Below, piece after piece: positions 8,446 through 51,825 of a stretch of 64,000 bases of DNA. The position numbers and the translations under genes are program-made. Source of the DNA: Marsupella aquatica. Its lineage: Eukaryota; Plantae; Marchantiophyta. Each line of letters opens with the position of its first letter. The first letter of the stretch is position 1. The notes under the pieces were generated by a model. It searched no databases. It worked only from the letters and a program-made list of their open reading frames with translations, and was not told the DNA's origin. The stretch covers positions 4,216,480 to 4,280,479 of the forward strand of contig OZ316898.1 in assembly GCA_973895155.1 (NCBI GenBank). The letters are read 5' to 3'.

Positions 8446-8544
8446 GGGGGCCGATCCTTTGCAGTGCACCAAGCTCTCCAATCCACGCGCCAGCTTCGAT
8501 CCCAGCTCTCTCGCTTTTCCTTAGTCACCTGCTATCTCCTCTGA

Positions 8545-16295: not shown

Positions 16296-16364
16296 TACCT
16301 ACGCTTCCTTCCTAACTTCATATCTCACGACTTAAGAAATGCCCCCTCCATCTAGCGCCAAAAA

Positions 16365-23419: not shown

Positions 23420-23441
23420 ATCACTATATGCATTAAAACTG
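23420..23441 (+). repeat. Left terminal inverted repeat
   Basis: ATCACTATATGCATTAAAACTG; reverse complement of 51804-51825 at 21/22. Confidence 0.88.
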
Positions 23442-24011
23442 AAATTATAAAGGATATAGGGAAATTTGGCGATTTAAAAACATAGTTTTAGGCATGAAAA
23501 TTGTAAATTTGGAAGATGAAAAATTAAAATTCAAGCATCATTAAATGTAAATTTGGGGACAAAAAAATGAAATTTTGGGAAAGTAAAATATTAAATTGGA
23601 TGATATTAAAAAACATTTGGGTGATAAAAGTGTTCATTTGGTTGGAAAATAGATAGAATCTAGTAATAACATATAAGCTTGGATAGCATCTATATTCAAA
23701 ACATTTAGCTTGAGTAAGATATCTAACTAAGCACCAATACAATGGAATGACTATAGTGTCTAGACAAAGTTAACTAGGATGATATCCAACCTACTAGAAG
23801 GAATGAAATGGCATCATTTTCTAGAATTAAAATATACTAAGACAAATAAAATAATAATTATAAGAAAGTCCATTCAATAGCTTTGAGAGATCATAGAGTA
23901 TTAATTTGATTGTCTTGTTCTCTCACTTTAGACCAACGCATGGAAATCAACTCGACCCTCTTAATCACAAGTCATTTGAGTGGAGACTTGTAACCTACGA
24001 GTTCTATCAAT

Positions 24012-26548
24012 CTACTCATCAATTATACCTTCCATGTAAATTTTGAGAGTTTTCAAAACATTCTTAGGAATTGTCAAACCTCTATCCATAATATTTTGTT
24101 CTTTAGCACCTGACTTAAACCCATACATTGCAGAATTTGCAAACTGCCAACTTTGAGTAACATTGTCAAACCCAGGATCCAGCTCCCAAGTCTTAGTGGT
24201 TTGAAAGCAACGTTCATATCGAACATCATCCTTTGCATCATGCTTACCATGTTTAGGCCTCCACCATTGTACTTGGAACATAGGAGCATTCCTAAGAGGA
24301 ATGCTCTCAACAGACGTTGAAGAAGACCCTTCAATATGTTGCAAATCTGTTGAGGGAACCTCATGGTTTGGATCCACACCACCCAAAGCTCGAACCAACC
24401 AGAAACACCCTTTGCCATTTTCTTGTTCCCATTCATCCTCTGGATGTAAAAATACAAAGGGACCTTCTTGAATATCTTGTAGAGGAATCCAACGTGCAGG
24501 TTCTCGCTCTTGTCGTGCACCAACAAAGGGTGCAGCTTGATCTTCCATCTCTTCCATGTACTCATTTTGAAGGTCCATCATCTCTGGATTTTGAGAAGGT
24601 TCACTTGACGGCGGAGATGTCCCCAAAATCATCTTGTAACCTGTGCCATGGTTAGTCTTTGGCCAAAAATCAGTTGTCAATGGCAAATGTCTTTCCCCCT
24701 CCCCTTCTATTGTAAGTTCCTCGGACAGTGCTTGCACAAGATTCTCCCAATATTTGACCAGAGGAAATCTCTCTTTATATGCTGCAGAGGTCTCATCCTT
24801 ACAACTTTTCTTCAAGAAATCAATATAGCGATTAAGGAATGGGATGATTTCTCCAGCCTTCTTTTGTACATCCCCAGATATAGGTTTTGCAAATGGTTGG
24901 CCTTCCGGTAAAATGAGCGCATTTGTGATGGGATCAGTTCTCCAAATGGACCTCCCCATTGCCGGAAGCCAAGGTTGCTTGACATGTGCTTTATATTGAT
25001 ACACTGGCACATTATCCCTCATGGAGAAAAGAAATGCCACTGGTTTTGAGTGACCTTCTATCTCTTTCACCTGGAAAGTTTTCAAATACTCCTTGTAAGA
25101 TGCAACCTCTTGAATCAATCATGGTACAGGATGAATGCTTTCACACTCCCAAACCTCAGCCATCAACCCCAAGAGGGTAGCAACCTCTTTGTATCTGACC
25201 TATTTGGATACTTGAGAAAATAATGCATCCACATCTTCATGGGTGTGGCCAACCATGAGGAATGACATTTGCACAGTTTCAAACACCCCCTGCTAACAAG
25301 CTCAGTGCAAAATGCCATCACATATTGATTTTTGTTATCTTTCCCTGAATTGTCCATCTGCAACGTTAGGTGCCTTGGTAAGGGCTTGAAAGAGCCCCTA
25401 GTAGTCTCAGGATCATCCTTAGAACCAACATCCACTGTGCTTGACTTTTTAGTCTCCTGACCATCTTCAATGCCTTGAAATCGAACAATTGAAACATTTT
25501 TGGGTTCCAAGTAAGCGGCCATAAATGCTTCAAAGTCTAGAAGGGACTGAAATATTGGCCTAGTTGCATTCCAATTCAATCCCTCAAGAAGGTCTCCAGT
25601 TTTGTCTCCTGTGTAATCTTCCAAATCTCGGAGGCATTTGGCCAAAGATGTCACGGTAAAGTCTGCATCTCCAGGCCAAAGTCCAGTCAAACTGAAATGT
25701 GTTAACATCTCAGTAAGAGCAATAGGCAAAGGCTGACCACTACCAGAGAGGGATTTTGGAGTGGGGACCAACCTGGGGATCCAAGTCTTGGCTTGATCCA
25801 TCTTATCGTGAATAATGCAAAGATAGTTTTGAGGATCCTTCTTTGCAAGAACCCTATGAGCATAGTAAACATATATTCTTGACATTTGTTCACGAAGATG
25901 TCGCGCTCTTTTCTCTTCAATCTCTGCACGCTCTTTTTTTCTCTTCTCCCGCATCAATTGATCTTTGAACTCAGTGCAAAATGTGCACTTGGCAAATGCA
26001 CTTCCCTTGTGAAAGTCAAAATTATCAAATGAGTTTTTCCAGATGTTGTACATAGTAACTTCAGTAACCTTAGCAAACCCATCTAATTCCATCTTAGTAA
26101 ACACCTCTTGGAAAATCTCCTTCTTAGTAAAACAAGATGGGAGCCGATATTCAATAGTGTCAGTGCCGTTGGACCCACCATAGGGAAGATGTGGCATTGG
26201 TTCCCCATTTTGGATTAAAATGGACTCCAACAAGGCGCGAGCGTGCAAAGTGCTTGATCGTGTCTTCCGTTGTCCCTGATTTCCATGGAAACCAATTATG
26301 CAACCAGCTTTGTATTGATTTTTGTAGTCATAGTACTTTGTTGTACTGAACCCATGCATTTTAATAAATGCATCTTTACAACCACACGTCCCTTTAGAAC
26401 AAAAAATCCCTTTCTCTTGACTTGCTCCTCTTTACACCCAAAGAGACTAAAGATGTGACTTGTTTTGTTGTCACTTGACATTCCATGGTATTCCCTCCTC
26501 ATTGCCTCTAAGTCCTCCCTAGGCATGTTCAAGCAACACTTCAGCTTG
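24012..26548 (-). pseudogene. Transposase, central and C-terminal part (DDD catalytic core), with frameshifts and stops
   Basis: CC..LKCC, (V)CKDAFIKMHGFS, FAKCTFC..H, IIHDKMDQ, LQMDNSGKDNKN, and after a frameshift at ~25290 FLMVGHTHEDVDALFS. Confidence 0.85.
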
Positions 26549-29500
26549 TGTGGTGCGTCCCATGGCTCCCTAAACCCAAGAAACCCCCCAGCTCAAGCCG
26601 ATTCCCGCAGGTTTCGTGCTTGGCGATGCCGTTTCCGCGGCTTAGCGGCATGGGACGCTGCTAACCTTCTACTACTACTATTAACATTTTACACACATAT
26701 ACTGGACAGATCCTTCATCGGGTCATGAGATACATAGCCGGCCTAATATAGGCCTTCCCCTGTCTTCCCCTGTCTTCCCCTCCGTCTTGTTAGGTATGTT
26801 TGGATTCCGCCGCCGGAATGATCCCCAATAGGCTTGGTTAAGCCGCTAAGACCTCTCTCAGCTCGACACATCCAACTCTCACTCCCCTGCTTACTTTCCT
26901 TCCTTCTGTTGATGTGGGCACTCTTCACACAAGTTAATGCGACACACAAATAGCAAAATGACTCATTCTGACTGAGTCATACCATGCACTTGCCATACAA
27001 ACAGTACATCTCATACACAAGTTCTGCGAACTAAGCCGTGAGGCCAACTCTATTCAGCTCTTAGGCATGAGGAAACATGAATATACACAAGGGTCACTGT
27101 ATGACTAACCGAGAGCTTCTTGTACTACTTGATCCCAGCCCGGCTGGTGCAAACTAAAAACTTGCTAAAGAAGAGGCCCTGAGCTCCCCGCTGCCCAGGT
27201 ACTTATCCTGGTAGTGGATCCGCCATTCTTTGCATTGTAAGCCTAATCTACTTAACAGTAATCTACTTGCCCGAATCTACCTATGTACAGCAAGGCAGGA
27301 GCACAAGTGTTGCTCCTACCAGTGGGACCGCAATCCCACTAAGCTAAGTGTCAGGGCCGCTCCTGGTTCTGATCCTAATCCTAAACGTGGAGATCCGCGC
27401 CCGCCCTGCCCACTCACGCCTCCTCCCTCCACGTCCGCCCTCCCTAAAAGGAACGGCGCCCTTGCACCGTCACGACACCGGTGGTGGATCCTCAATGGAC
27501 GCCCCCAACACTTCCTCCTCAGCCACTGCCGTTGGCCCGCCTACTGACAGATTACCTGCCCTTGACCGAGTCAACTCTCCATCGGCCTGACTGGGTCCAC
27601 CTTCGGCTTCAGCCTCGACACCGGCCTCGGCAATACCCACGGCTTTGGCCTCAGCCACTCCCACGGCTTCGGCTTCAGCCACTCCCTCGGGTAGTTGGAT
27701 CCTTAGCCGTGACCCTGTCTGGGGTCGGTGCTGGGTCTACCTCCTTGATCACCACGGCCTGTGAAGTCGTATTACTCCTTGACCCTGAAGGTTTCCGCTT
27801 CTTCTTCGTTGGTGGCTCGGCAGCTGGTCCCTTCCCCTTCCCACTTACTTCCGGCACTGGTGCAGGTGGCGCGGCTTGTCCTTCGGCAATTACCACCCCT
27901 GGTAACTGGTTTGTCCCAACAGGAGATGGACCTGCTGCAGCTAAGCATTTAAATACTGCGGCTTGTTTCTTCAGCCGCTCTATTTGGTTGTCGGCCCGCC
28001 GCTGTAGGTTCTCCATCTTCCTCATGATTTCCTCCAACTCCTCTTGGGTTTCATCCAGGTCCTTACGTGCCCCCTCCAGCTCATTTTTGGCCTCCTCCTG
28101 CTCCCTGTGGGCTTCCTCCAATTCCTTCTTCAAGGTAGCCCTCTCCTCCTGGGTTGCTCTTAGCTCCTTGTCGAGCTCTGCAATGATGACAGACTCCATC
28201 TGGTTCATCTTGGCGTAAGTCTGTTCGAGCATCTCGTCCTTCTCCCTTAGGTCGGCCTTGAAGCTGGCCGTCAGGGACGCAAGCTCCTGCTGCAACGCCA
28301 TAATCCCTTGATAGGATTTCCCTAACTCGACCTCCTTCTGCTCAAGGGCTCCGCGGATTTTCTCGAGCTCCCCTTTCAACGCCCATTCCTTTCTTTGGGT
28401 CTCCGCCATGGCCCGACTGTTGGCTGTTATGTGGGCCTCCTCTGTATTCTTCAGCTCTTGCTTCCACTTTTCCCTCTCTTTGATCGTGTCGGCCAACTCT
28501 TCCTGCGTCTGAGTCAGTTTATCCTTGATATTCTGATTATCAGCCTGCACGGCGTCCAACTGCCCCTGCATGATGTTCAGCTCATGTCGTTTAATCCGCA
28601 GTTCATCTTGGGCTTTCTTGGCCGCCCTTAGATCTTCAATCTCGGCTCCCATCCTCCTAAGCCGCCGAATGACCTCGTCCTTCTTGCTTCTCTCTAAAGC
28701 CACCGCTTCTTCTAATTGGTGCTTCTCCAACTGCTCCCTATGGAAAAAGGGTCCTACCTCCAACTCCTCTCCAAAGATGCCGAGCGCAAGTTCCCCACAC
28801 ATCTCACCATACTCCATGGCTCTATTCTTAGCGTAGGTGGAGTAAGTAGAAGTGATCGGCATCGCCCATCGTGGCCTCTGCTCCCAAGCCGTCCTGCGGA
28901 TCTCTTCAATCGTGGCTAGAGGTTTGCTTCCTTTTTCGGCTAGCCGCCTGATGTCCTCCGGCCAATCTCCTCCTGGTAAATCCTTTTCCTTAGCCAGGGC
29001 GGCCTCTTCCTCCTGCTTGATTCGCTCCTGAAATTCCTGCACCGTCTGTTTTATGCCGTCGAAGCTCGGGGGAGCAACATCTGGTGGGGGAGACTCAGGG
29101 CTACTCTGCTGGTTGGGGTCCCCTCGCACTACCCTTGGAAGTGTGGGGACAAACCGGCCACAGGTCCTTACTCCTGGAACGTGATGGTCCGACCCATAGC
29201 CGGAATTATCATGGCTGCAGTCCTCCACTGCCTCCTCTACCTCTTGGATTTCCGGCTTCTCCCTCTCCTCTTCCTCGGTAGGAGCTTCAGGCAATTCTGC
29301 CTCAGATTCGGAGCTTGAGGTTCCCACGTACATTCGAACACCTGGCTTGGATTCCGGCCTGATTCTCTCCTTGTCTCCAGCAAAGGGGTTTTCTCTTGTG
29401 AGCCGGTGTAGGCCTACCTCTGTAGTAGTGTCCTGCATTGTTGCCGTTGCCGTTGTTGTTGCCGATGCCGATTTCTTTTCTTTCTCCAGTAGTTTCAGCA

Positions 29501-31185
29501 GACTCTGCATGCCTGGTTGCTGCATCGGCAAGTCTTCCTTCCTGGGCCTAAACACCTGCTCGATCGTAGGACTAACAGGTGGTTGAGGCTTCTCAGCCAA
29601 CGGCCTCGGCGTTGGAGCTTCCTCGGGTGCCCTTACCTGCAGGGGAAGTACCGGGGCAAAAGTCTGACCTCTGGCATACCGGCACAACAGCGGCATGTGA
29701 TAGCCAAGCCGCGACACGCTCCCCATGCCGATTACCTACTGCTCCTCCTTTAAGATCTTCTTCAATTGGTTGAGGAGGTACCCGTTGTAGTCCCGGCTTG
29801 GGTCTGGCCTTTCTGCCAAATAGACCTGTGCCTTGCCGATCTCTGCCCTCGGCAAGTTACAATGCATGGTCACCCGCAAGAAGTCGATCATCTCTCCTAT
29901 GTGCGGGTTGGTGCAGGTGTTCCGGAAGAAGCCATTCTTCGTTGATGGCCCGGGGAACGACCGGAACTCCTTGTCAGGCAAGGTCTTCCTGGTATCAACT
30001 TTGGTCTTATTGCCCATCGGCAAGCCAAACACTTCGGCAATCACCTTGGGAGTAAGATAGAAATCCTTCCCATATATCCTCGTGCAATTGGTCTCGGGTT
30101 CCCATGACCCCACGAATTCTAATAGGTCTGACTCCGGTACCTCCGGCTTCAGCCATGGTAATCTTACAAAGGCCTCCAAGCCGGATCCGGCCATGAAGCC
30201 TTGGTACTTCTTGGTCTGCATGGCCGTAAAGCATGCATCCTCCTCCCGTGCAAAATGTAGTTGCACCTCCACCGGTAGGGTTGCCGCCCAGCCCTTCCAG
30301 GTGTCATCCCTGGTTGGAATGGCCTTGATGGGATCGACCTCCTCCTCTTCGGCTTCTCCCTGCCTCCTGCTCTGCTGCTCGGCTGGCTTCTTTGGTGCCG
30401 CCGACCTCGTTCTTTTTGCCGGGGTGGCTTCATCGTTGACGGCTCCCTTCCTCTTCATCTCTGCTGCCGTGGAGGTTTCTCCTAGCACCGTTGCCTGGGT
30501 CCACCTTTCCGTGCTACCCTTTAATTCCCAGTGTATGTCGTTGCAGTTCTTGATGGCCTCTCGGATGCCGACGACGCTGTCTTTGCAAAACAGAAGATCG
30601 TCGAGTTGATTGGAAGTAGGCGTCCACAGGAACTCGTCCTTGATGAGTTCGCCTCCTAAGAAAGCCGTCTTCTGCAGCTCCCACAATCGAGCGAGCTCCT
30701 GCCATTCTCGAGCTGCCCTTTCTGACTCCTCGTCCTCGTAAGTCTTGATGTACTCAGTTGCCCGTTCGAACAGGCATCCCCAGAAATGTGCCGCTTGATT
30801 GACGTTGCTCATACCCTCCTTAGGTTGATCGTCGGTATCTACTCTCTCCCCGAGTGCTTGCCTAAGCAGCTGACAGTAGTTGGCCTCCCGTAGTCGTCTG
30901 CCTAGTTCGTGCTCGCAAATGAGCCACCATCTCCTGCAAGCGCTCCTTACCCCTCTCCTCTGCCGGTCCTTCTTCCCGTTGATCCTTCCTAGCCGCCGAC
31001 GCTTAACGCGCCCTAACCCTAATCGGGTTTTCACCCTCAGCCTTACCTCCGGCCTCTGCCCGGGTTCCATGGTTGCCCCTAATTGTTTATATTTTCCTTG
31101 TTTTGTCACTATACTAAGGTGTTCCTAGGGTGCCTTCCTGCTTTACCCACTTAACCGGCCGAGTGATTCCTGTCTAGGCATCACA
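26549..31185 (-). repeat. 3' LTR of A1 (4637 bp)
   Basis: Sense TGTGATG..CACCACA; duplicate of 37410-42046. Confidence 0.97.
27470..31109 (-). pseudogene. LTR-encoded ORF (~1200 codons), one in-frame TAG (29736-29738) and a late frameshift (~27680)
   Basis: 457-aa and 683-aa ORFs are in one frame; first ATG ~31070; core LEAFVRLPW..LLEFVGSW..VYGKDFYLTP..VFGLP; long coiled coil; KKKRK. Confidence 0.88.
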
Positions 31186-31200
31186 TAGCTCCCCACTTAA
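31186..31200 (-). promoter_or_regulatory. Polypurine tract overlapping the integrase C-terminus
   Basis: AAGTGGGGAGCTA directly before the LTR TG; the integrase stop lies inside the LTR (31174). Confidence 0.75.
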
Positions 31201-34200
31201 TTGTGAAGCGTCCTCGCGAACAACTTCATCTTCGTCCATATAGTATTTCTTGAGGCGGTCATAATGGATGCGAACTGGATATACCTCTCCCGTAATGTTG
31301 GCCAATTGCACGGAGCCATTGGGGAACATCATGGTTACTCTAAAGGGTCCTAACCAGCGAGTGTAAAGCTTTCCTGGAAACCTACTATACCTACTGTCAT
31401 AAAGTAGCACAAGATCACCGGTATGAATACTAACTACTTTTAACCTTTTATCATACTGCTGCTTCATGATATTCTGTCTATATTCTACTCTCTCGGCTGA
31501 AATCATTCTCGCTTCCTCTAAAGCTTCTAACCTATATTCTCGCTCCTTTAGGCTCTCCTCCGCTCAGGCTCTTTCCTCAATTGTAACTTGAAATGTCGGT
31601 ATCTCAAGTTGCATGGGTACCAAGGCTTCTTGTCCAAAGGTTAAGAAGAACGGTGTATGACCGGTAGTGGATTTATAGGCCAGATTGTAAGCAAAAACAG
31701 CAGCAAACAATTTATCATCCCAATCGAGTTTGTTCTGAGCTACTGTCTTGTTCAATATCTTTCCTATGATTCCGTTTGCTCGTTCTGTCAACCCGTTTGC
31801 CTTTGGATGGTAGGGAGTAGTAGGCCTATGTTTAACTAAATACTGCTTATTTAAACGACTAATTATATCATTCAAAAAATGGGTTCCTCTATCACTAACT
31901 AATTCTAGGGGTGCTCCATACCTGGTGAAGATCTGCTCATACATGAATCTAGCCGTAGTAATTGTATCATCCTTCGTTGTTGGTCTGGCCTCTACCCATT
32001 TAGTTGCATAATCCGTAGCCAGGATTATGTACTTGTTCCGTCGAGGGTGGGTCAGTGGTTTCAGAGGTCCAATGTAATCAATACCCCACTTCTCGAATGG
32101 TGCTAGAGGTAGAATAGGGTGCAGTGGATGCCTGGTGGACGCCCTTGGTCCTCCCGCTCGTTGACAAGGATCGCATTGTTTGATAAACTGATAGACATCT
32201 TTGTGCAAGGTGGGCCACCAGTAACCGGCATTTAATATCTTCTTAGACGTGGTTACTGGGGCAAAATGTCCTCCGGCCTCCTCTCCATGCATGGCCCGTA
32301 GGACTCATTTTACCTCTCTCTTCTCCAAACACCTTTGAATCGTGCCGTTGATTCCATGCTTGTGCAGTATGCCTTTAATGCACTGATACTGTCTGACCTT
32401 CCGCACAAAGACTGCGGCTTGCTCTCGGCTTAATCCTGGCTATAATCTGGAAGTGCTGAGAAATTGTAAAATCTCAGGGTACCATGTACCAGCTATTTCC
32501 ACAACGAATAGCTCCTCGTCGGGGAATCGATCATCAATGCAATCCGTGGCAGGTTTACCTGTGATCCTTGAAAAGAAGTCGGCGTTGGCATGTAACTTTC
32601 CTGGCTTGATCCTCAGCTCATAGTCAAACTCCTGTAATAGCAAAATCCATCTTGCTACTCTGCCTGTAAGGTCCGGCTTATTGACTAGGTACTTCAAACT
32701 TTCATGATCAGTATGAAAGATTACCTTGTACCCTAGTAAATAATGCCTAAACTTTTTACAAGAATAAATGACTCCTAATGCTTCTCTTTCCGTGGTAGAG
32801 TAGTTCCGTTCGGCATCGGCAAGCTGACGGCTTGCGAAGTATATGGGATGGTCCCTTCCTTTCTCATCCAACTGACTTAGTACTGAGCCAATACAGAAGC
32901 CCAAGACATCTACAAAAACATGAAAATCTTTGTTCCAGTCCGGTGCTATCATGACTGGGGCCTCTACTAACATCTGCTTCAATTCTACCACCGCTGTGAC
33001 TCGTTCGGGTGTGGGTTCGAAGTCTGCTCCTGCCTTGAGCATATTGGTTAATGGTAAAGCCAGCTTGGCAAAATCCTTGATGAACCGGCGATAGTAACCA
33101 ATGCATCCCAAGAAGGATCTTACATCCTTTATGTTCTTAGGTTGCATGATATCTAGCCATACTGCTAGCTTACCTTTGTCAATCTCAATGCCCTTCCTTG
33201 ATACCTTGTGACCTAGTAGCACCCCCTCGGTTACTGCAAAAAAACATTTATCTGGGTGTAACTTGAGACCCACCTCTCTACATCTCATGAAGGTTTTCCT
33301 GAGGTATTTAGCATGTTTCGATGCCTTCCCGAATACTGCAAAGTCATCAATGAAGATTTCCATGAACTTTCTCAAGTAATCATGAAAAATGTTCACCATT
33401 AATCGTTGGAACATAGCTGGTGCGTTGCAGAGTCCAAACGACATACGATTGAAGACATAGATCCCCCATTCCGTGATGAAGGCCGTCTTGATTTGGTCTT
33501 CCTGCCGAATCCTGATTTGGTTATAACCAGAGTATCCATCCATGAATGAATATAGTTCATGACTGGCTACCATGTCTAGTACCATATCAATAAACGGTAA
33601 AGGAAAATGGTCTTTTAATGTTGCTTCATTCAGCTTCCTGTAATCCTGACAAACCCGGATCTTGGGTTTACCATCGGGTCCAGCTTTCTTGGGAACTATC
33701 ACAATTGGAGACACCCAGTCTGAATGCAGGACTGGAGTGATGAATCCAGCTTCCACTAGTTTGTCGATTTCTGTTTTGACCAGCAGGGAATACTTCGGGT
33801 TCATCCTTCGAATTGGTTGTCGAAATGATTTGGCTCCTAACATGAGATCAATTCGATGTTCCCCTAGTGTTGGATCTACTCCCTTTAGATCTTGGTGACT
33901 CCATGCAAACACATCCTGAAATTCAATCAATAAGTCACTGATCTCTTTCTCGAGCTCAGGTGCTAGGTTTCTCCCTAAGTTCAGTTCTCTTCCCTCTCCT
34001 AAGTCGAGCTTCCGATATTGCCGTGCTTGGATCATATTAATCTGCTTCTTCAAATTCGGGTCCAGTTCGGCTTCCAGTCTCTCTAATCTCATACCTCCAT
34101 AAACTGGGATCTCGGCTGGACTAGCCGAGTCGGTCCCTTCCTTGGTGTCCATAGATTGTCCCCTTACCGGTCTATTCGGTTTTGAATTAGTGGTCGGCTC

Positions 34201-34346
34201 CCCTTCCTGCCTTGGCTCTGGATCGTGTCTGTCCATCTCATCCACCTCTTGCTCCTGAGAGTTAGGCCGCTGTGCTCTCTCGGCTTCTAATAGGGCCTCA
34301 ATTTGTTCTGCCCTCGTAATCGGCTTGTATGCCGATCCCTTGGTAT

Positions 34347-37340: not shown

Positions 37341-37386
37341 TACCTACGCTTCCGTTCTAACTTCATATCTCACGGCTTAAGAAATG

Positions 37387-37405
37387 CCCCCTCCATCTAG
37401 CGCCA
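37387..37405 (-). promoter_or_regulatory. Primer binding site
   Basis: TGGCGCTAGATGGAGGGGG, 4 nt from the 5' LTR; identical in A2. Confidence 0.82.
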
Positions 37406-37409
37406 AAAA

Positions 37410-40400: not shown

Positions 40401-42046
40401 TCCTGGGCCTAAACACCTGCTCGATCGTAGGACTAACAGGTGGTTGAGGCTTCTCAGCCAACGGCCTCGGCGTTGGAGCTTCCTCGGGTGCCCTTACCTG
40501 CAGGGGAAGTACCGGGGCAAAAGTCTGACCTCTGGCATACCGGCACAACAGCGGCATGTGATAGCCAAGCCGCGACACGCTCCCCATGCCGATTACCTAC
40601 TGCTCCTCCTTTAAGATCTTCTTCAATTGGTTGAGGAGGTACCCGTTGTAGTCCCGGCTTGGGTCTGGCCTTTCTGCCAAATAGACCTGTGCCTTGCCGA
40701 TCTCTGCCCTCGGCAAGTTACAATGCATGGTCACCCGCAAGAAGTCGATCATCTCTCCTATGTGCGGGTTGGTGCAGGTGTTCCGGAAGAAGCCATTCTT
40801 CGTTGATGGCCCGGGGAACGACCGGGACTCCTTGTCAGGCAAGGTCTTCCTGGTATCAACTTTGGTCTTATTGCCCATCGGCAAGCCAAACACTTCGGCA
40901 ATCACCTTGGGAGTAAGATAGAAATCCTTCCCATATATCCTCGTGCAATTGGTCTCGGGTTCCCATGACCCCACGAATTCTAATAGGTCTGACTCCGGTA
41001 CCTCCGGCTTCAGCCATGGTAATCTTACAAAGGCCTCCAAGCCGGATCCGGCCATGAAGCCTTGGTACTTCTTGGTCTGCATGGCCGTAAAGCATGCATC
41101 CTCCTCCCGTGCAAAATGTAGTTGCACCTCCACCGGTAGGGTTGCCGCCCAGCCCTTCCAGGTGTCATCCCTGGTTGGAATGGCCTTGATGGGATCGACC
41201 TCCTCCTCTTCGGCTTCTCCCTGCCTCCTGCTCTGCTGCTCGGCTGGCTTCTTTGGTGCCGCCGACCTCGTTCTTTTTGCCGGGGTGGCTTCATCGTTGA
41301 CGGCTCCCTTCCTCTTCATCTCTGCTGCCGTGGAGGTTTCTCCTAGCACCGTTGCCTGGGTCCACCTTTCCGTGCTACCCTTTAATTCCCAGTGTATGTC
41401 GTTGCAGTTCTTGATGGCCTCTCGGATGCCGACGACGCTGTCTTTGCAAAACAGAAGATCGGCGAGTTGATTGGAAGTAGGCGTCCACAGGAACTCGTCC
41501 TTGATGAGTTCGCCTCCTAAGAAAGCCATCTTCTGCAGCTCCCACAATCGAGCGAGCTCCTGCCGTTCTCGAGCTGCCCTTTCTGACTCCTCGTCCTCGT
41601 AAGTCTTGATGTACTCAGTTGCCCGTTCGAACAGGCATCCCCAGAAATGTGCCGCTTGATTGACGTTGCTCATACCCTCCTTAGGTTGATCGTCGGTATC
41701 TACTCTCTCCCCGAGTGCTTGCCTAAGCAGCTGACAGTAGTTGGCCTCCCGTAGTCGTCTGCCTAGTTCGTGCTCGCAAATGAGCCACCATCTCCTGCAA
41801 GCGCTCCTTACCCCTCTCCTCTGCCGGTCCTTCTTCCCGTTGATCCTTCCTAGCCGCCGACGCTTAACGCGCCCTAACCCTAATCGGGTTTTCACCCTCA
41901 GCCTTACCTCCGGCCTCTGCCCGGGTTCCATGGTTGCCCCTAATTGTTTATATTTTCCTTGTTTTGTCACTATACTAAGGTGTTCCTAGGGTGCCTTCCT
42001 GCTTTACCCACTTAACCGGCCGAGTGATTCCTGTCTAGGCATCACA
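37410..42046 (-). repeat. 5' LTR of A1 (4637 bp)
   Basis: Duplicate of 26549-31185; about a dozen substitutions seen by eye, no indels. Confidence 0.97.
38331..41970 (-). pseudogene. LTR-encoded ORF, 5' LTR copy
   Basis: Same 457+683 aa ORFs and the same TAG as in the 3' LTR. Confidence 0.88.
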
Positions 42047-43202
42047 TCTTGCAACAACCTTCTCTTTGGATGGAATCAATGGACTCCTCGTTAATTTTCA
42101 AAAGTGCCCTCGACTCCAAATGCCTTTTCTTCCTCTCCTCAAGATCAAATTTTGTCCTCCTAATGAAATTGTATGGTCTTTTTGTAGGTTTACCATCACC
42201 ATCCGAATCCGGATCGCCCTTAGTTCGACCCGACTCCATCCACTTCTCTAAAACTTCCTCAAGGATATCCCCAAGAAACCTTTGAGACGAAATCAATAGA
42301 AGGGATTTGATTTCCCACCTCACCAAGCTAGGGGTACCAACACGGATATTTGGAAATAATCCGGGTTCATTGATATTCACAACAGCAACACCAACATGAT
42401 CTGCACCAAGAAGTTCATCGTCAACGGCACCTGTTTCAAATGGGATCGTGATAACACCTGTTGCAACCTTTCGACAATGAGAAGCGTCATACAAATCAAC
42501 CTCCTCCGCCATCCAGTTGGAACGTAGTGTAAAATCTTTTAATGGAAGATCATTGAAAATATTTGAACTACCAAACACGCCAAAATCTCGTAGAGTGCCC
42601 TTTCTAGAAACATGCGCAACATCCCAGATAACCCAGGTATGCAAGGCCTCTTCTATTGTATCAGCTCCAGGGTGCGAGTATGGCAATTTTTGATTTCCCT
42701 TAACAATATCAAATATTCTTATACTAATGCGACCAACCCCGAGTGTTTCAGTATGACAAATATCCATCGGATTTGTCTTGAAAATGACTCCATTTGCAAC
42801 CAACTGATCAAAAATGAACATCTAAACTTCATCTCCTTCCTTGAACACGTCCTCTTCAACCCTTGCATCAATTTTGGATTTATCATTTCCAGCATCTCCA
42901 GCCAAAGAGAAATCATCGACATTGATTCTTCGGCGCAGAGTTGATGACCTCAAGTATGCCAATGCACAATCCCAAATCACGCAGGAGTCAATTGCCTCAG
43001 CCAATGTAGAAAATTTGGGCGAAGGAAATGGAAGTTGACGCAATGCATCAAAACACTTTTCGATCAATACCCCAATTCGATTGTCCCCTAGACAAATATT
43101 CTGTATAGTATCCTGGGGGTCAACCTTTTGAACTATCCCAATTGCCGTTTCAAATCCATCGATCACCAATGACACTTCATCCCCTCGTGTAAAATTGATC
43201 AT
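42047..43202 (-). pseudogene. Transposase N-terminal part with three tandem Tnp1/En-Spm(TnpA)-like beta domains; one in-frame stop (42822)
   Basis: Three repeats of GDEV..VA.G......LG....V.......LP.P....T..EA....VIW; continues in frame across the Gypsy insertion. Confidence 0.75.
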
Positions 43203-43324
43203 GATAGCGGACTATCTGTATTCAAATAAAGTTAGAAATTGTTAAGTTCCCCATGTTACAATCATGTTTCAAAATCTGGACTCTCCTCCAAAAAATATTG
43301 TAAAATCACTCAAAACCCTAAATA

Positions 43325-43660
43325 CATTCAAGTCGGGTCGGAATTATTTCGACCCTCCTCCAACATTATGTCTTGAAATGATTGAATTGACTAAACATTT
43401 ACAAGTCGGGTTGGAATTATTTCGACCCTCCTCCAACAATATGTCTTGAAATGATTGAATTGACTAAACATTTACAAGTTGGGTCGGAATTATTTCGACC
43501 CTCCTCCAACAATATGTCTTAAAATGATTGAATTGACTAAACATTTACAAGTCGGGTCGGAATTATTTCGACCCTCCTCCAACAATATGTCTTAAAATGA
43601 TTTAATTGACTAAACATTGATAAGTTGGGTCAGAATTATTTCGACCCTACTCCAACTATT
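43325..43660. repeat. 73-bp tandem array (~4.6 copies) with an imperfect palindrome
   Basis: Units start at 43330, 43403, 43476, 43549 and 43622; core GGGTCGGAATTATTTCGACCC; inverted core at ~43759-43775. Confidence 0.92.
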
Positions 43661-45214
43661 AAGTTGAAATTATGTCAAAACTATTTGTGAAACTATCTTG
43701 CTTATGCTTTTATATACCAGTTTAAAATGCTAGTTAAGATGACATAGTCAGGTCGGCACGAAATAATTCCGACCCACTTCTAGAAACTATGTTAGTAATC
43801 ACATAAAGGGGTACAGTAAGTTCTACACATGCTAGAATGTGGATAAAGGTCTAGAATGAGTAAAATATATGATCTAGAACCTAATGTGTAAATCTTAATC
43901 TAGGTTTGGCTTAAAGGTATTGAATTAGATGTACTTGAGCTAGTACTTCTAAGATAAATAAATAAAATCACTAACCTGCTCCGCAATATATCTCTGTCCA
44001 CCCTTGTACAAGCTAAATGGGTACCTTGGATGCCAGCATTGTAACTCTTAGCACCACAGTGCTCACCAGTGCCCTTACTAAACCTTGCATTCAACCATGC
44101 GGACCTAAACAAGGCACTCGGACAGAGGAGAGTCAGTGATCGTACCAATCACTGTCTAAATGACAATGAACCAAAAAATGGATTGTGGGAGGTCTATACT
44201 CAGTTTGAGAGGCAAAAAGCTTACACATTACCCAGCACACGAGTGGACACCAACAGATCGGGCACGGGTGGATGAGGCACGCACCCAGCACACAAGTAGA
44301 CATCGGATAGGGTGTCAGCCAATCACTCACGAGTGATAGGTGAGTTGCGAGCACACACCGCTGACAGCTCGGAAATTTAAAATTGGTAGGTGAGTCGCGA
44401 GTGGTCGTGAGTGGTCACACCATCGGTGACTCACGATCACATGCACCGAGGAGGGTCTCCATCATTGGCGCGCATTGATGCCTCCGTACCCTCTCGGATC
44501 CTTGCCTCCTTGGACTCCTCGCTCACAGGGGGTATAGGAAGGCAGGCCTTGCGCTTGAGGCCTCATTTCCTTGCCTCCCTCTTGCCTCCTCTCTCGTCTC
44601 CTCACTCCTTGCCTCCCTCTTGCCTTGCTCTAGGGCTTTTGTTTTTGCCTCGCTCTTGGGATTTGTTTTCCGCCTCGCTCTAAGGCTTTTATTTCCGCCT
44701 TGCTCCCTTCCCTTTTGGGTCGCTCCCTCGATCATTGTTTGCCTGTTAGTGCCCTCTTGCAGCCTGTGGCATTCTCCATTGCTACCACGTGTCATCTTAA
44801 ATCTCACTCGCCCCTTACAATGTCTACTTCCTCCAGTTCTGAAGCTTCCACCACCTCCGCCAGTTCTCAAGAGTCATTGAACTTCAATTATAACTCTCTG
44901 TATGAATATGACCCTGAAGACCCGAATGTCCAAAAATTGGTTAACAATGCGTTGGAGGCATCAAAGAAAGCCCAGTTAACTTTTCCACGTAAGGCACCAC
45001 CTGCTTCAACTTCTTGCCTCGCCCTAAGGGCGAGGCAACTTTACTTTAATTTGGATTTCAAACTTCTTATTAGGAAAATTTCTATATTCCTTTGCAGTCG
45101 CCTCGCCCCAAGGTCGAGGCGACGTCTACTTCATTCTAGATTTCTTGTTGCTCCGAAGGCGTATTGGACCTTGTATCTTACATTAATAAAGGATCTTTAG
45201 CTATATTCTATTTT

Positions 45215-45648
45215 TTGCCTCGCTCTTGGGACGAGGCGATGTCGTCTGCATTCCTCAAATGTAGTCTACATTCCCAGAAGTTGCCTCGCCCTTGGGACGA
45301 GGCGATGTTATCTGCATTCCTAAATGTTGTCTGCATTCCCAGAAGTTGCCTGGCCCTTGGGGCGAGGCAATGTCCTCTACATTCCTAAATGTTGTCTGCT
45401 TTCCCAGAAGTTGCCTCGCCCTTGGGGCGAGGCGATGTCCTCTGCATTCCTAAATGTTGTCTGCTTTCCAGAAGTTGCCTCGCCCTTGGGGCGAGGCGAT
45501 GTCCTCTGCATTCCTAAATGTTGTCTGCTTTCCAGAAGTTGCCTCGCCCTTGGGGCGAGGCGATGTCCTCTGCATTACTAAATGTTGTTTGCTTTCCTAG
45601 AAGTTGCCTCGCCCTTGGGGCGAGGCGATGTCGTCTACATTCCTAAAT
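45215..45648. repeat. 64-66 bp tandem array (7 copies) in intron 1, each with a hairpin palindrome
   Basis: GCCTCGCCC-TTG-GGGCGAGGC (some copies degenerate) at 45217, 45283, 45348, 45413, 45477, 45541 and 45606. Confidence 0.93.
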
Positions 45649-46794
45649 AATGTTTGATTGCTTGGATGAGGTGGCAGGGCTAATTGCACTAGGAGCAAAG
45701 AAGATTTTGCAATCTTCTATTTGTCGCCTCGCCCCAAGGGCGAGGCACCTTGAAAGTTTTCCACATGTCAATGTTAAAAATATGATGCTGACCATTTTGT
45801 TTTCAATGTTTCTTACCAGGAAAAAATCTTGAGAAGCCGGAGTTAAATATTATGGACGAGGATATCAAGGACTTTGTTTTCCCTGACCAAGATACTCCAG
45901 GATTTAGATGGGCACTAGAAGTTGGGGTGTCGGCGGAAGGCAGTCTCTTGATTTGTTTCAAGGGCCTCACAAGTCAATTGAATGACCGCAAGACAATTGT
46001 TACTCTAGGTCCAGTCATCCTTGTGAACACGGACAACAACCGCAATGCAATGATTATTGTTGAGTCCAATGAGAAATCTCAGTGGATGAGACTTCTAGTG
46101 CCAATAAAACTCTACTCGACTTTACTGAATGTTGAGTGGATGGCTCGATTGGAGATAAGCGTAGCTGATATGGGATTCTTCCCAGATGGAGTAACAATTG
46201 ATCAGATGTTTGAGAAGTCGCGTTCTCAAATAAGTGGAGTTGACCTAGTGTTTGGATTTCTCTACGTAAAGAAGCACATGCATGACAATGCGGACAGTGT
46301 GGACCCTCCGTCTACTTGGATAGTTCAAAGGATGATTGATAAGGCACATTTTTCATACGAGCAAGCAATCGACAAGAGTTTCATTTTTTGTCCAGAGTTT
46401 CAAGAGGCCGTGTGCCGGACGTGGATTTCAGAGATGAAGAAAAAAGAAGCAAAGCATAAGGCAAAGGAGAGAAAGAAGACAGTGGAAAGAAGTGCGCAAT
46501 CAAAGACAGAGAAGAAATGAAAGCTTCAAGAGCCGGTTGTTCAACAAGAGAAACAATCTGGGAGTTCACGCCGTAAGCAGATGGCTAAAAAAAATGAAGA
46601 TGATGAGGGCCCCCAAAAAAAGCAGACAAAGAAGGCAAAGGTTGTGAAATCAAAACCAATGTCAGGGTCGACTTCAAACTTTGTCTTGCATCCAGAGAAT
46701 GATATGTGTCCGACAGAAGGACCCAAAGAAGATGATGTGCTCAAAGGCCAAGAGGTTTTGCGTAATATTGAGCAGTATTATACTTTTGGCATCC

Positions 46795-47160
46795 GCGAAG
46801 TTTTTGATATTCCTGTAAAAAGTATTAATCCGCCATCGGCCGTTTTTGTATATCGAATGTTCAATCTTTCGCATGCAATGGAGATATCAAAGTCTATGAT
46901 GAAAAACCCTAGACAGGAACCACAAGTTGCTGATTAGATTCCGTATCGCGAGAGCACTAAACAGTTGCTTCATTATGACAACACACCTCAGGATAGGAAA
47001 GAGTTTTTGATTGGTGTGAAGAAGCATGAGATCCAATTCCTTGCCATCAGTGGCCAGCATTCTGCAAGAGCTGCCCAATGGATCCAAGGGTGGGCCGAGA
47101 CTGACGCCAAGCTGACAAATCTTGCCAACAAACTAAAGTATAGGAAAGCAAGGATCCTAT
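46795..47160 (+). other. ParB/Srx-like domain
   Basis: VFDIPVKSINPP...YR.....H..EISKSM...FLAISGQHSARAA resembles the ParB/Srx GxHRxxA signature. Confidence 0.6.
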
Positions 47161-48369
47161 CTGACCTCACTCCGAAGACAATTTTGGTTGAGCATTCAAG
47201 TTTATCGAATGCTGTCAATGATACTATGCAATTTAAGTCTTGTTTTTTAGAGACTATTGTTCATGCACGAAGGCAGTTTGAGGAGTGCGGGAAACCGCCG
47301 CGTCCAGGGATTGGGACCAATCAAAATACAGACAGGAAAAACTATCAGGTACATGTTGGAGCAACGCAAACTATTCTTGATCCGCTTTGTTTAAAGATTG
47401 TCAATGGTAGAGGTTTGCCTCGCCCCAAGGGCGAGGCTGCCTTTTCTTGTTTTCCTTGGTTAGAAGATTAAAGCAAATGTTTGCCTCGCCCTGAGGGCGA
47501 GGCAACCTAGACTAGTCTCTCTAAGAATAATTCCCTAGTTCCGTTTCAGTCAATTGCGGTTAGATGTAGAGGTTCGCCACGCCCTTGGGGCGAGGCGGCT
47601 TAGCCTGTTTCAAACATAGGTATAAATTTTCTAACATATGCATTGTACCCTGAAACTAATGTCAAGTCCATTGGATATGCAGGATTGGTTTGCCCTGGCA
47701 AAGGTTACAATGGGGAAGTCAAGCCTAAAGAGCATTTATTGGTTACTTTTTGCCGAAGATGAGCTCTTTGAATTATGGCAGAATGTGTGTGCAAAATGGT
47801 TGAGTGGGAAGCTCCAAGACGGGGCTGGTGGGTATGGAGGGCCAAGACCCCCAAAATTGATCACTCTCAGTACCTTTCGATGTTTTGAAGGAGAGATTAG
47901 TAGCAAACAGATAATTGAGATCTTGAAGGACGTTGAAGAGGAGCGTGTCTTGCTGAAGAAGGATATCACCAACAAATCAGAGCTTGTCGCAATGGGAGAC
48001 TTGGCCCTTACAATCAAGATAATGTCCAAATTGAGAACAGTCATTATTGGCTATTTCGTGGAAAAGTATCGTGAGAAGTTTCCTGTTGGCACATCTTGGG
48101 AGTCTCTGGTGATATTGTCGCCTTCCTTGAAATCTGAGCTTGAGATGACAAAATTGAGGAGAGCAGCAGGTGAGGTTTACCTCAACAATTCATTGAAGAA
48201 GAATGTGGTCAAGGAGAGTTTCCCACAAAGTCTGATGGTCAGACTAGATGGGTTGTATTGTAAAGAATTTGGTGGGATTGGTCGTTCTCGCATGGAGCCT
48301 TTCTTGACATTTTTTAGTGAGAATTTGATGAAGACGACCGTGCCGGAAATGCTACAAGAGCCTTCGCCT

Positions 48370-49085
48370 TTGTGTCCTCTTGCCATTGTTGACTTCAGTA
48401 GGCTCCGACAACATGTTTGGACCGATGCTGAAATTATTGCATTACTGCAATACATTGTGGATCTTCCAAGAAATCCAACAATTGTTGTTGTCATGACTGT
48501 GCATCCGGGGCCACTTGCTGCAAACATTTTGAGTGCCCTTAGGAAATTGCAACATGAAAAGGGAATGGACATCCACGTCGACTACGGGAGCTATCGACGG
48601 AGTGATACACCAGTTCCAGAGGGCTTACTTTTCAGTTGTGGTATGGAGGAGATAATCTTTGCAGGAATCACCACTGAGGAGAAATTTGATTGGAAGCAAG
48701 TGTTCAGGCCTGGATTTAATTGCCAATTTTCTTACAATTCGGCGATCGACCCTGATTTCCAAGTGGAAGACAAGACGGAGAAGCGAGATAAGAATAAGAG
48801 TAAGACAAGTAAGGAGACAGAGACTGAGTCAACTTCGGCATTTCACATTGGAGATTTCTTACAAAAGGCTCCCATGTTTGAGATGGTGGGAAGTAGAGGT
48901 GGCTTTGTGAATATTCACGCTAAGCCAAAATGTATGCTGCAGAGTATTATTGAATTTTTTTCGGCTGAAGGGGAGACTATACTTGACTTTTTCTCAGGAG
49001 GACAGGTTATGAAGGTGTCATTGTTGTGTTTCAGAGAATGCTTTGCGTATTCAAACACTGAGGATGAATATGATTTCACTCAGGC
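48370..49085 (+). other. Beta-class N6A/N4C methyltransferase-like domain with degenerate motifs
   Basis: NIHAKPKCMLQSIIEFFSAEGETILDFFSGG (motif X-I) C-terminal to LAIVDFS (motif IV position). Confidence 0.7.
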
Positions 49086-50314
49086 ATATGGAAGGTTTCT
49101 CTGCGAGAAAGTTCCTTCCATAATGAGTGACCGGATGGGCAGTTCCAAATTTGGTAGAGCTCGCAATGGGGTTTCCGAGCATGTTGGTGCCAAAGAAGGT
49201 GTACACCAGGGCGAAGATGATATTGAGGAAGGAGAATTGGGTCACGACACAGACGACAGGGTCACCCGAAATTTGGATGAACGTGGAACACAAGTGGTAG
49301 GTATTCCCTACTTTGGTGTGGGGTTGGCTGATGTTGTGGGTCGACCTGAGGGCGACGCACCAAGAAATCCCTTTGCCGGTGTAGAGAATTGGATGCACCA
49401 ATCGGACCCAGATCTTACATCGTCCACATCGGACGCACATTGGAAGGCAACCGCAGATGGTCTAGGCAATATTGACGTAGTAGAATTGGGAGAAATGTCA
49501 GACATTGTGCTTGCAAAGGAGGATGATCGTCAAGTACCTGAGACCGCTGCAAATGAAGAAGAGAAGGCAGGTGCTTCAAATCCTCCCGTCTCCTCTATAT
49601 TGCTCATCAGAGACTAAATTGGTTTTTACAAGTGCTTCTACAGGAAGCCCCGTAGTATCATCATTTTCACAAAATTCTGGATCCGAGATCGACAGGACTG
49701 GATATATGAAAACAGTCCGTCCTGCAACTCATTTTATATGGAGAAATGGACCAAAGGTTGGAATGATAGAATCACTAGACGATGCTCCAAAGATAATGGC
49801 AAAATCAGATTACGAAAAACTGAACTTGAGACTGAGCCCAGTTTTTGCACCCCCATCCTTTGAAGAGCAACTTCCCAGTGGTATCAATTCCGAGATACAG
49901 AGTGTTCTAGGTGATCAAACAATAGATGAATTTGGGCATTTTAGCATTGGAAATTATTAGCCCTTTCTTTGGTTCTTGGTATTTTAATGATAATCTAAGC
50001 TTTATCTTTGTAATAATATACTTTTTTACAGACCAAAGTTCCGTCGTAGAATCTCCTTCCTCAAAGAATTTTGTTGGCATTCCCTTGGAAAGCGTTGCTG
50101 TGGAGGAAGGGTTTGACCCAGGTATACTTTGGATCTAAAAAATGGCAATTGAATGTAATTAATGTTTTTCTAGGAGGGTCGCCCCAGGGTCGTTCCTCTC
50201 TACTTCAAATGCTATAACAAAGTTTGTTTGATTTCAAATTTTGAGAGTTTTCCTCTGTAGTAATTGTTTAAACTTTGAGTCGCATTGACTAAGGGCTTAT
50301 GTTAATGTTTCCAG

Positions 50315-51354
50315 AATTCACTCCAATACTACACTCTCCGATCCGGCGAAAGCTCTTGGTTCTTGACCTTAACAAGATTTGTTGGGATTGCATTAAGACC
50401 AGAAGCTCAGGACCATGGCGAAATCAGACAAGTTTACGTGGTGTGCACTGGGGGAGACGTGGAGGGTTTAATTTCATGTATGTGGAGCGCCCATACCTCC
50501 ACGAATTTCTATATGCAGCTTTCATGGTTTTTGACGTCGCAATTTGGACCTGTGCAAGGAGGCCAAAAACAATGGACTTAATGGAGTTGATTTTCACTGA
50601 GGAGGAGCGACAGAAGTTCAAGTTTGTCTTTACTCAAGAAGATACCTTTGATAGTTGCATCCAAAGGCCAGATATAACAGATGGGAAGGCCAATTTACTT
50701 CTGAAGAATTTGCAAACCATTTGGGACCGTTTTCCAGAAAAATATGATGCTTCTAATACAGTTCTTATTGATGATTCTCCATTGAAGGCATTTTTGAATT
50801 ATGACGTGAATGGATTGTTTCCAAATCCATTTACTCACACAGCTTCAAATGACACTTTTTTGCCCGAGATATTATGGCCGTATCTTTGCAAATTGAGAAA
50901 GGCTTACTGCGTTCAACATTATATCACTGTCAACAATCCAAAGTGGTCTGTTTTCAATTTATTAACAAGCAAGGAGGATCATGCTGCCATCTATGCTCTT
51001 TTGGAACAGAAGTGGGGAGATTGTCGTTGTATCCATAGGGAGTTTGGAACCATCTTGGATGTGACTCCTGAAGAGATTCCTTGGGACGGAAAGAACGAGG
51101 TGCAGCATTACCCACCATTGGAGACGTGGACCACGGATGAGATCGAAGAAACTGCAAACGTAATACTTGGAGACAACTATTCTAGTCCTCATACACAAAA
51201 TGGAAGGCATTTTATTTGGAAAGTTCTCAGAACTAGGGATCTCACCAATAAGTTTAAGAACCACCATGCGAGAGATACTTGCAACCGTGACATCCGCTAT
51301 GATAAATCAGGAAGCAGACTTTCTTGTTCAAATGAGTTTTGTCTTGATCATTAG
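50315..51354 (+). CDS. Last exon: FCP1/NIF-like HAD phosphatase domain, open frame
   Basis: RRKLLVLDLN, ERPYLHEFL, FDVAIWT, LLKNL..IW, NTVLIDDSPLKA..N. Confidence 0.85.
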
Positions 51355-51803
51355 GAGATAGGGTTGCTCTAGTGCCTACCCTGAATTGTACATTCATATT
51401 ATGTCTTGAAAGGATATGTTTTGAACATGTAGGATAAAGTAAATAATTAGGATATATGCTTAGTGTGAGGCTCTCTCACTGGACTGGACAATTTAATAAT
51501 TATATAGTGGGTCAATCTCATTTTGACCCTTGATTTATGACCATCTATATTTTTTAATTTATAGATGGTCTGAGTGGTACTGGCCTCTGATTTTTGGACT
51601 AAATTAAATTTACTCTAATTTTTAAATTAATTAGAATATATGATTTAAGTTATTATTAAACATTTGGGTGAAAAAAAACAAAATTTTGGGCGTTCAAAAG
51701 TGTATATTTGGGCTGAAAAAAATTAGCTTTTGGGAATGCTTTAATAGAAATTTGGCCTGAAAAAAAATAACTTTAGGGTTCATCTTATGGACTTTTAAAA
51801 GTA

Positions 51804-51825
51804 CAGTTTTAATGAATATAGTGAT
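51804..51825 (-). repeat. Right terminal inverted repeat
   Basis: CAGTTTTAATGAATATAGTGAT followed by TAAC. Confidence 0.88.

Follow-up and report, generated by a model that had tools for sequence, protein, structure and literature searches.

A dead, cargo-bearing DNA transposon, probably of Sola1 type, carries ParB–methylase-like and phosphatase-like genes in the liverwort Marsupella aquatica

The subject of this analysis is a 64,000-nucleotide stretch of the Marsupella aquatica genome (contig OZ316898.1 of assembly GCA_973895155.1, positions 4,216,480 to 4,280,479 of the forward strand), referred to below as the window and numbered from its first letter. Positions 23420-51825 are in all probability a single old, dead and large cut-and-paste DNA transposon of Sola1 type that bears cargo and is interrupted by a Gypsy retrotransposon. 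The remains of its transposase gene lie on the minus strand. The plus strand carries two accessory genes, one encoding a protein with ParB-like and methylase-like parts and the other a protein that resembles FCP/SCP-type (NIF) phosphatases, together with arrays of palindromes.

The limits of the element were read from its termini. Two 22-bp terminal inverted repeats (TIRs), at 23420-23441 on the plus strand and 51804-51825 on the minus strand, pair at 21 of 22 positions, with a single G/T difference between them. They are flanked by identical 4-bp target-site duplications, TAAC, at 23416-23419 and 51826-51829. When up to three mismatches were allowed, the 22-mer was found at only these two sites in the 64-kb window, compared with 0.00 sites expected from shuffled sequences. 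The TIRs start with ATCAC, and near-identical termini are common to five loci: the window and the related loci L001, L004, L006 and L010. Inside each TIR is a subterminal region (23442-24011 on the left, 51355-51803 on the right) with AAATTTGG-like motifs, which occur at a spacing of ∼43 bp on the left (23462, 23505 and 23549) and, for example, at 51748 on the right, where variants lie nearby. These motifs may be transposase-binding sites.

Between the TIRs, the unit is masked by a nested Ty3/Gypsy long terminal repeat (LTR) retrotransposon of 15,498 bp on the minus strand (26549-42046), recognized by its LTRs and its domain-bearing open reading frames (ORFs). The two LTRs, of 4,637 bp each (26549-31185 and 37410-42046), are 99.76% identical, and the internal ORFs follow the order gag, reverse transcriptase, RNase H and integrase on the minus strand. 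A 5-bp duplication at 26544-26548 and 42047-42051 (GCTTG/TCTTG) matches at four of five positions. After removal of the Gypsy element and one copy of this duplication (26549-42051), the transposase frame carries on into 26547 and the remaining unit is 12,903 bp long. The retrotransposon is a young insertion in the transposase gene. An earlier reading of the same DNA, made from the letters alone and called here the sequence-only reading, had proposed a TIR DNA transposon of 12.9 kb with a 4-bp target duplication, bounded by 22-bp TIRs ∼28 kb apart with an adjoining TAAC repeat and hidden by a ∼15.5-kb Gypsy inside its transposase. Each of these proposals held, down to a transposase frame that is unbroken at the join.

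The transposase gene runs along the minus strand from 43202 to a natural stop at 24012-24014. Its 5′ part (42052-43202), located by tblastn with the intact relative P0015, encodes an N-terminal region of two similar modules; its 3′ part (24012-26548), located with Pfam DUF7869 and tblastn, encodes a core with three acidic motifs and a C-terminal domain. The core matches DUF7869 at E=2e-11. In addition to the Gypsy insertion, the gene has suffered frameshifts within 26374-26413 and 25277-25292 and stops at 42822-42824, 25200-25202 and 25119-25121. It is complete in extent but dead, because tblastn aligns residues 1-1248 of the 1250-aa P0015 to the window as four pieces in three frames. When cluster representatives were scanned in full with HMMER, 881 relatives were returned at E-values up to 0.001. 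Intact proteins of 1,101-1,250 aa are among them, DUF7869 was present in every relative checked, and those with names belong to a liverwort (Riccia sorocarpa), a nemertean and a sea urchin. A literature search under the name DUF7869 gave nothing. An alignment of 20 relatives keeps a CxxC block and three Asp-containing acidic blocks; these three are the motifs HDKMD, QMDN..NKN and GHTHEDVD, which the sequence-only reading had quoted in its call of a minus-strand DDD transposase of the Sola kind.

That call can be made more precise. Sola elements have DDD transposases, 4-bp duplications and TIRs of 11-1124 bp, can exceed 15 kb in length and occur in the moss Physcomitrella (PMC10741241). The present family shows a 4-bp duplication in two species (TAAC in the window and ATAA at locus L001 of the liverwort Calypogeia fissa), and its 22-bp TIRs lie within the Sola range. 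The three acidic motifs are consistent with a Sola DDD transposase, the identity of the catalytic Asp residues and the RNase H fold being predictions. Compared by eye, the transposase of Sola1-1_Ec32 from Ectocarpus, a curated sequence printed in a supplement (PMC12477816), shows the CxxC block as well as all three acidic blocks; the supplement sequence of the Sola2 transposase DFa-2 (PMC3627910), also compared by eye, has clearly different blocks at those places. This by-eye comparison of motifs with supplement-printed sequences points to an element of Sola1 type. A CMC/CACTA element was considered and rejected, on account of the 4-bp duplication and because Pfam gave no CMC domain.

On the plus strand, the first accessory gene comprises two ORF blocks separated by an intron. 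Exon 1 ('A', 45852-47348), delimited by alignment and fold search, encodes an N-terminal domain of unknown fold that is connected by a lysine-rich linker to a predicted ParB/sulfiredoxin-fold domain. The intron (47349-47682) begins with GT and ends with CAG, is in phase 0 at both ends and contains three palindrome copies. Exon 2 ('B', 47683-49960), characterized by Pfam, profile and fold searches, encodes a helical domain, a predicted fold of the beta-class N4/N6 DNA methyltransferases and a C-terminal domain that is conserved. At all six loci examined, a codon-boundary GT follows the conserved end of A and a CAG precedes the conserved start of B. The junction is conserved in L001, L002, L006, L007 and L009 and is also used by the C. 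fissa gene model P0002. Because the GT/CAG junction is shared by these loci and used in P0002, A and B most likely belong to one gene as its two exons and together specify a protein of ∼1,300 aa. Exon 1 has in-frame stops in the window at 46518-46520 and 46935-46937, which we regard as mutations because the metagenome contigs L002, L006 and L007 have one uninterrupted ORF of 514-577 aa in place of the stretch that had been taken for several exons (45852-47471). The equivalent of exon 2 is one ORF of 664-901 aa in relatives; the window copy has one frameshift, within 49505-49617, and a natural stop at 49958-49960.

The assignment of a ParB/sulfiredoxin fold to the C-terminal part of exon 1 has moderate support from structure prediction. 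In the AlphaFold model this part has predicted local distance difference test (pLDDT) values of 63-93, and the top Foldseek matches in the PDB were Noc, ParB, sulfiredoxin, PadC and KorB, with probabilities of 0.91-1.0. For gene B, Pfam N6_N4_Mtase scores fall mostly below the gathering cutoff, that of the window copy included. M.RsrI, a beta-class adenine methylase, is matched by the family profile at 6e-7 in the NPxxKP...DFFxG region, which leads up to and takes in the S-adenosylmethionine-binding motif. Foldseek placed the predicted model beside M.PvuII, CcrM, M.MboIIA and M.RsrI (2e-7 to 1e-6) and, within an overall range of ∼2e-7 to 5e-5, a rotifer N4C methylase. The S-adenosylmethionine-binding motif I region, DFFSGG, is invariant among the relatives and the NPxxKP block is kept. 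Gene B is thus predicted to have a beta-class N4/N6 methylase fold with a motif I region. The catalytic motif IV, (D/S)PP(Y/F/H), is absent from all nine gene B relatives: at its place, assigned by position in the predicted model after the expected strand, stands DFSR, or else DFGR, DFTR or DLLR.

Downstream on the same strand lies the second accessory gene, an intact ORF of 351 aa (50299-51354) with a Pfam NIF match of 1e-16, above the cutoff. The nearest solved relatives of its profile are UBLCP1 (4e-11) and CTDNEP1 (1e-4). The motif II Thr, motif III Lys and motif IV Asp-Asp of the phosphatases are conserved, and a family-specific C-terminal extension carries a cluster of cysteines. The window sequence LDLN aligns to the LDLD of CTDNEP1 DLDETL, so that DxD becomes DxN (DLN for DLD). 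Asn takes the place of the second Asp of DxDxT in seven of the nine aligned sequences that cover the motif; the two exceptions are P0183, which lacks a corresponding residue at this alignment position, and L004, which reads EVE. The second Asp of DxDxT is the general acid in FCP/SCP phosphatases, and its replacement by Asn would be expected to slow or block turnover.

The plus-strand cargo accordingly differs in detail from what had been anticipated. The sequence-only reading had described a divergent, spliced plus-strand gene of ∼6.5 kb as the second gene of a two-gene system. Its strand and its orientation opposite to the transposase were right, as was the proposal of conserved non-transposase genes transcribed away from the transposase. 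The cargo is 5.5 kb long (45852-51354) and consists of two genes; its splicing comes down to the single intron at 47349-47682, the other frame breaks being mutations. A single 6.5-kb multi-exon gene was rejected, since in intact relatives there is just one intron and the NIF gene stands apart. In place of two genes the family therefore has three: that of a transposase of ∼1,250 aa, the ParB-like/methylase-like gene and the separate NIF phosphatase-like gene. Repeat arrays do separate the gene blocks, as had also been noted, with 73-bp units at 43329-43656 and 65-bp units at 45215-45648.

Related loci connect this cargo to the transposase and to the TIRs. In L001 of C. fissa, the transposase lies on the minus strand and A, B and the NIF gene on the plus strand in the same order, with 44-65% protein identity to the window. 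This unit is 13.9 kb long, has TIRs at 1267 and 15178 that differ little from the window TIR, and is flanked by the ATAA duplication; its transposase also has stops. The order A-B-NIF recurs in L006, L007, L008, L009 and L010, while L003 has B-NIF and L004 has B-C48-NIF. In the window, L001, L004, L006 and L010, the NIF gene is followed after 380-720 bp by a TIR of this type. Because the full arrangement with its TIRs is present in C. fissa and the cargo order recurs in seven other contigs, the accessory genes travel with the element and have been maintained as proteins. The sequence-only reading had asked whether other copies would unlink the transposase from the cargo or the TIRs, and whether the cargo would have a host ortholog outside any element. 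The outcome favours that reading: in L001 this transposase and this cargo occur together with TIRs nearly identical to those of the window, and protein searches turned up no host gene orthologous to the cargo apart from such contexts.

Several of these loci show variations on the arrangement. L010, a second C. fissa locus, holds a cargo-only copy (7558-13747) with a right TIR at 14451-14472; adjoining it is a separate transposase copy (17022-20697) with a TIR at 21133-21154. At least two subfamilies appear to coexist in C. fissa, because the transposase parts of L010 and L001 are 90-96% identical in DNA sequence and the cargo parts only ∼80%. In L004, a metagenome relative, an ORF for a Peptidase_C48 (Ulp1-type SUMO protease) lies at 4275-5030 between the methylase-like gene and the NIF gene. 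C48 proteases are familiar passengers of plant Mutator and CACTA elements. L005, from Riccia sorocarpa, has two tandem, cargo-less DUF7869 transposases (9338-12720 and 14779-19619) that are ∼40% identical to that of the window. No left TIR partner was found for these Riccia copies, and their weak TIR-like matches may be due to chance.

The repeat arrays of the window fall into two types. Beside the transposase start, a tandem array of 4.5 copies of a 73-bp unit (43329-43656) has a hairpin-type inverted repeat, GGGTCGG...CGACCC, in each unit. The other type is a 9-3-9 palindrome, GCCTCGCCC NNN GGGCGAGGC, of which ten copies occupy 45016-45746, a region upstream of the ParB-like gene that includes the 65-bp tandem array at 45215-45648. 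The 9-3-9 palindrome has 13 matches in the window against none expected, and all lie within the element; three are in the intron, at 47417, 47483 and 47576. An Rfam search of the window gave no matches, and an exact look-up of eight window ORFs in the protein collection likewise came back empty. In C. fissa (L001), a palindrome of different sequence occupies the same places and also occurs before the NIF gene; its outer six bases are identical to those of the window palindrome, whereas the inner three differ on both arms. L002, L004, L006, L007 and L008 have their own palindrome versions upstream of exon 1, in the intron or in both. Outer half-sites are nevertheless reused, GCCTCG in the window, L001 and L002 and TTTCAC in L006 and L008, and the half-site GGGTCG is common to the transposase-side array of the window and L004. 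Conservation of position with turnover of sequence fits a site for a sequence-specific dimeric binder, for which the ParB-like domain would be the obvious candidate.

These features suggest a mechanism, which we put forward tentatively. The ParB-like domain would read the lineage-specific palindrome arrays that precede its own gene and recur in the intron, in the manner of ParB at parS. Its binding would recruit the methylase-like module, and possibly the NIF-like protein as well, to element DNA or to the transcription machinery, and the likely purpose would be to regulate the element or to shield it from host silencing. A cargo that acts on chromatin or silencing is plausible and agrees with suggestions made in the algal studies discussed below. 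Because DPPY has become DFSR and the general-acid Asp has become Asn, changes that are both conserved in the family, the methylase-like and NIF-like proteins may serve as binders or scaffolds, or carry out an altered chemistry, rather than work as standard enzymes. The most specific version is that a bryophyte Sola1 lineage keeps a self-recognition cassette, in which a ParB-like protein with co-evolving parS-like arrays is joined by a methylase-derived module and a substrate-trapping protein that resembles phosphatases of the C-terminal domain (CTD) type. This version is rather unlikely. If true, it would mean that an element possesses a system by which it marks its chromatin or transcription or withstands silencing, and that a plasmid-style ParB/parS module has been reused in a plant transposon.

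Several observations weigh against this overall interpretation, beginning with the class of the element. The Sola1 assignment is based on a by-eye comparison of motifs with one supplement sequence. A transposase of another superfamily, CMC/EnSpm or Sola2/Sola3, would also agree with a Pfam name that says DUF7869 and no more. We consider it very unlikely given the 4-bp duplication in two species, the close match of the CxxC and three acidic blocks to Sola1-1_Ec32, the different blocks of Sola2 DFa-2 and the absence of CMC Pfam domains. The linkage of cargo to transposase is limited by the more distant Riccia relatives (∼40% identity), which have no cargo within 10 kb. These copies, like L010, where cargo and a right TIR come with no transposase within 7.5 kb upstream, could be taken to mean that the plus-strand genes are host genes caught between transposon ends, or a one-off capture, and lie outside the mobile unit. 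The same genes are found in the same order and orientation with a TIR in the window, two C. fissa loci and several metagenome contigs, however, and the arrangement persists at only 36-48% protein identity. Among 5.8 billion proteins, the three products have just 9, 4 and 12 relatives, none of them named as a host gene. A host origin of this kind is nearly refuted.

Other observations concern the functional steps. Support for the ParB fold is moderate (Foldseek E-values of 0.009-0.05; mean pLDDT of 50 for the exon 1 model), and there is no match to ParB at the sequence level: a PDB search with the gene A profile returned low-complexity noise only, and Pfam searches with the ParB-like pieces were empty even at E=10. 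The ParB arginine motif GxxR, which serves CTP binding or nuclease activity, is replaced by SGQHS, and the Arg that follows is unconserved. The cargo-less Riccia copies also have a palindrome array upstream of a transposase (L005, 13435-14652), with five copies of GTAAGGAC N4 GTCCTTAC between the two transposases. The function of the arrays may therefore lie with the transposase or a host factor, or they may be no more than common internal repeats. That they are unrelated to the ParB-like protein, and are instead transposase-binding sites, promoter or terminator elements or common tandem repeats, is a real if minority possibility, to which the second array type beside the window transposase start (43329-43656) also lends weight. 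Against it, arrays stand at the same places, upstream, in the intron or in both, in at least seven lineages despite their changes of sequence, and red-algal Plavaka elements likewise pair a ParB-fusion gene with inverted-repeat arrays. A further alternative, which we think has a good chance of being correct though not quite an even one, holds that the accessory proteins are not enzymes at all but DNA or protein binders, decoys or dominant-negatives, which might hold a phosphorylated target or occupy element DNA. It parts from the recruitment mechanism only at the last mechanistic step. It is favoured by the loss of (D/S)PP(Y/F) in nine of nine relatives, by the Asp-to-Asn change in DxDxT in seven of nine while the other phosphatase motifs are kept, and by the unconserved ParB arginine motif. 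The invariant DFFSGG region and the retained NPxxKP block speak against it, and conserved substitutions may equally reflect a changed substrate or chemistry.

Recent work on algae provides the closest parallels, and the claim of the sequence-only reading that this architecture was undescribed did not survive them: both Ectocarpus Sola1-1_Ec32 and the red-algal Plavaka elements are precedents from 2025. Sola1-1_Ec32 carries on the opposite strand a gene for a ParB-methylase protein of 1,104 aa, measures 21.5 kb and has 282-bp TIRs, AACCG termini and a 4-bp duplication; its authors suggested that the accessory protein binds and modifies its own transposon, and giant elements of Ectocarpus often have nested insertions and pseudogenized transposases (PMC12477816). 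It resembles the present element in the transposase motif blocks (by eye), in the 4-bp duplication and in the opposite-strand ParB-methylase gene, the accessory proteins being likened by description only. It differs in its size, TIR length and termini (here 12.9 kb, 22 bp and ATCAC), and neither a NIF phosphatase-like gene nor palindrome arrays were reported for it (PMC12477816). The giant Plavaka (EnSpm/CACTA) transposons of red algae, described in a study of Bostrychia, have three accessory genes: PAG1, of unknown function; PAG2, an N6A-methylase with a SET domain; and PAG3, a ParB-like protein with a 2-oxoglutarate (2OG) oxygenase, which adjoins tandem inverted-repeat arrays (Petroll et al. 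2025, bioRxiv 10.1101/2025.02.11.637652). Shared with the present family are a conserved accessory cassette, an N6A-methylase-type protein, inverted-repeat arrays next to the ParB gene and mostly degenerate copies. The Plavaka transposase is of another superfamily, however; its ParB part is fused to a 2OG oxygenase and its methylase to SET, and there is no NIF gene. The present family thus shows two features of the giant transposons, a ParB-fusion accessory gene within the TIRs and inverted-repeat arrays beside that gene. That an accessory protein acts on its own element is a hypothesis in the algal papers too (PMC12477816; bioRxiv 10.1101/2025.02.11.637652).

More distant systems share single aspects of the family. 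Bacterial and phage ParB-methyltransferase fusions (ParBc with N6_N4_Mtase), together with M.RsrI, CcrM and M.PvuII, offer the same domain order, fold and motif I region. The bacterial enzymes have (D/S)PP(Y/F) as motif IV where DFSR is found here, and the bacterial fusions differ from the present gene, with its intron, its extra N- and C-terminal domains and its setting in a eukaryotic transposon. Fungal KDZ/Plavaka elements with TET/JBP genes and VANDAL (Mutator) elements with VANC likewise carry a conserved gene whose action on the element's own epigenetic state is presumed or demonstrated, but their transposases and cargo proteins are unrelated to those described here. The anti-silencing function of VANC has been demonstrated experimentally, whereas the cargo function in M. 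aquatica is a prediction from sequence. The FCP/SCP phosphatases UBLCP1 and CTDNEP1 share with the third gene the NIF domain, the motif II Thr, the motif III Lys and the motif IV Asp-Asp; here, the general-acid Asp is Asn, a cysteine-cluster extension is added and the gene is borne by a transposon.

Within a limited view of the literature, what appears to be new is the bryophyte lineage, the NIF-like gene, the DFSR and DxN replacements, the short and strongly conserved TIRs and the palindrome-holding intron. Repbase may already contain the family as a Sola1 entry. Transposons with conserved genes that act on their own DNA or chromatin are rare, and the class that combines ParB with a modifying enzyme has so far been mentioned briefly and in algae only. 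The present family would extend it to a bryophyte-related lineage, since its closest named relatives are liverworts. Its TIRs, intron, position-stable arrays, third conserved gene and catalytic-motif replacements form a comparative data set from which testable questions follow. For genome annotation, the three ORFs should be treated in bryophyte assemblies as transposon genes and not as host genes.

The window also contains other repeats. Both the length of the LTRs of the nested Gypsy and the fact that they contain an ORF are unusual: each 4.6-kb LTR holds an ORF of 457 aa (40597-41970 on the minus strand, with its equivalent in the left LTR), for which Pfam returned no match. Immediately upstream of the element, at 11599-22000, there is another Ty3/Gypsy copy, which is related. 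Its internal part (11599-13929) is 92-94% identical to 32649-34974, and its LTR-like part (16572-19532) shares 75-92% identity with the nested copy's LTRs. The region is flanked by inverted GC-rich repeats (0.54-0.57) at 8090-11508 and 53338-60251, 72-92% alike, which probably represent another transposable element family; further internal inverted repeats lie within 53.6-59.7 kb. Two pairs of inverted repeats are 84-89% complementary, 1669-1878/21918-22144 and 4453-4877/7359-7793. The former pair, ∼20 kb apart, brackets the upstream Gypsy and might represent the termini of a further interrupted DNA transposon. Finally, an 18-bp tandem repeat of ∼11 units occupies 5989-6186.

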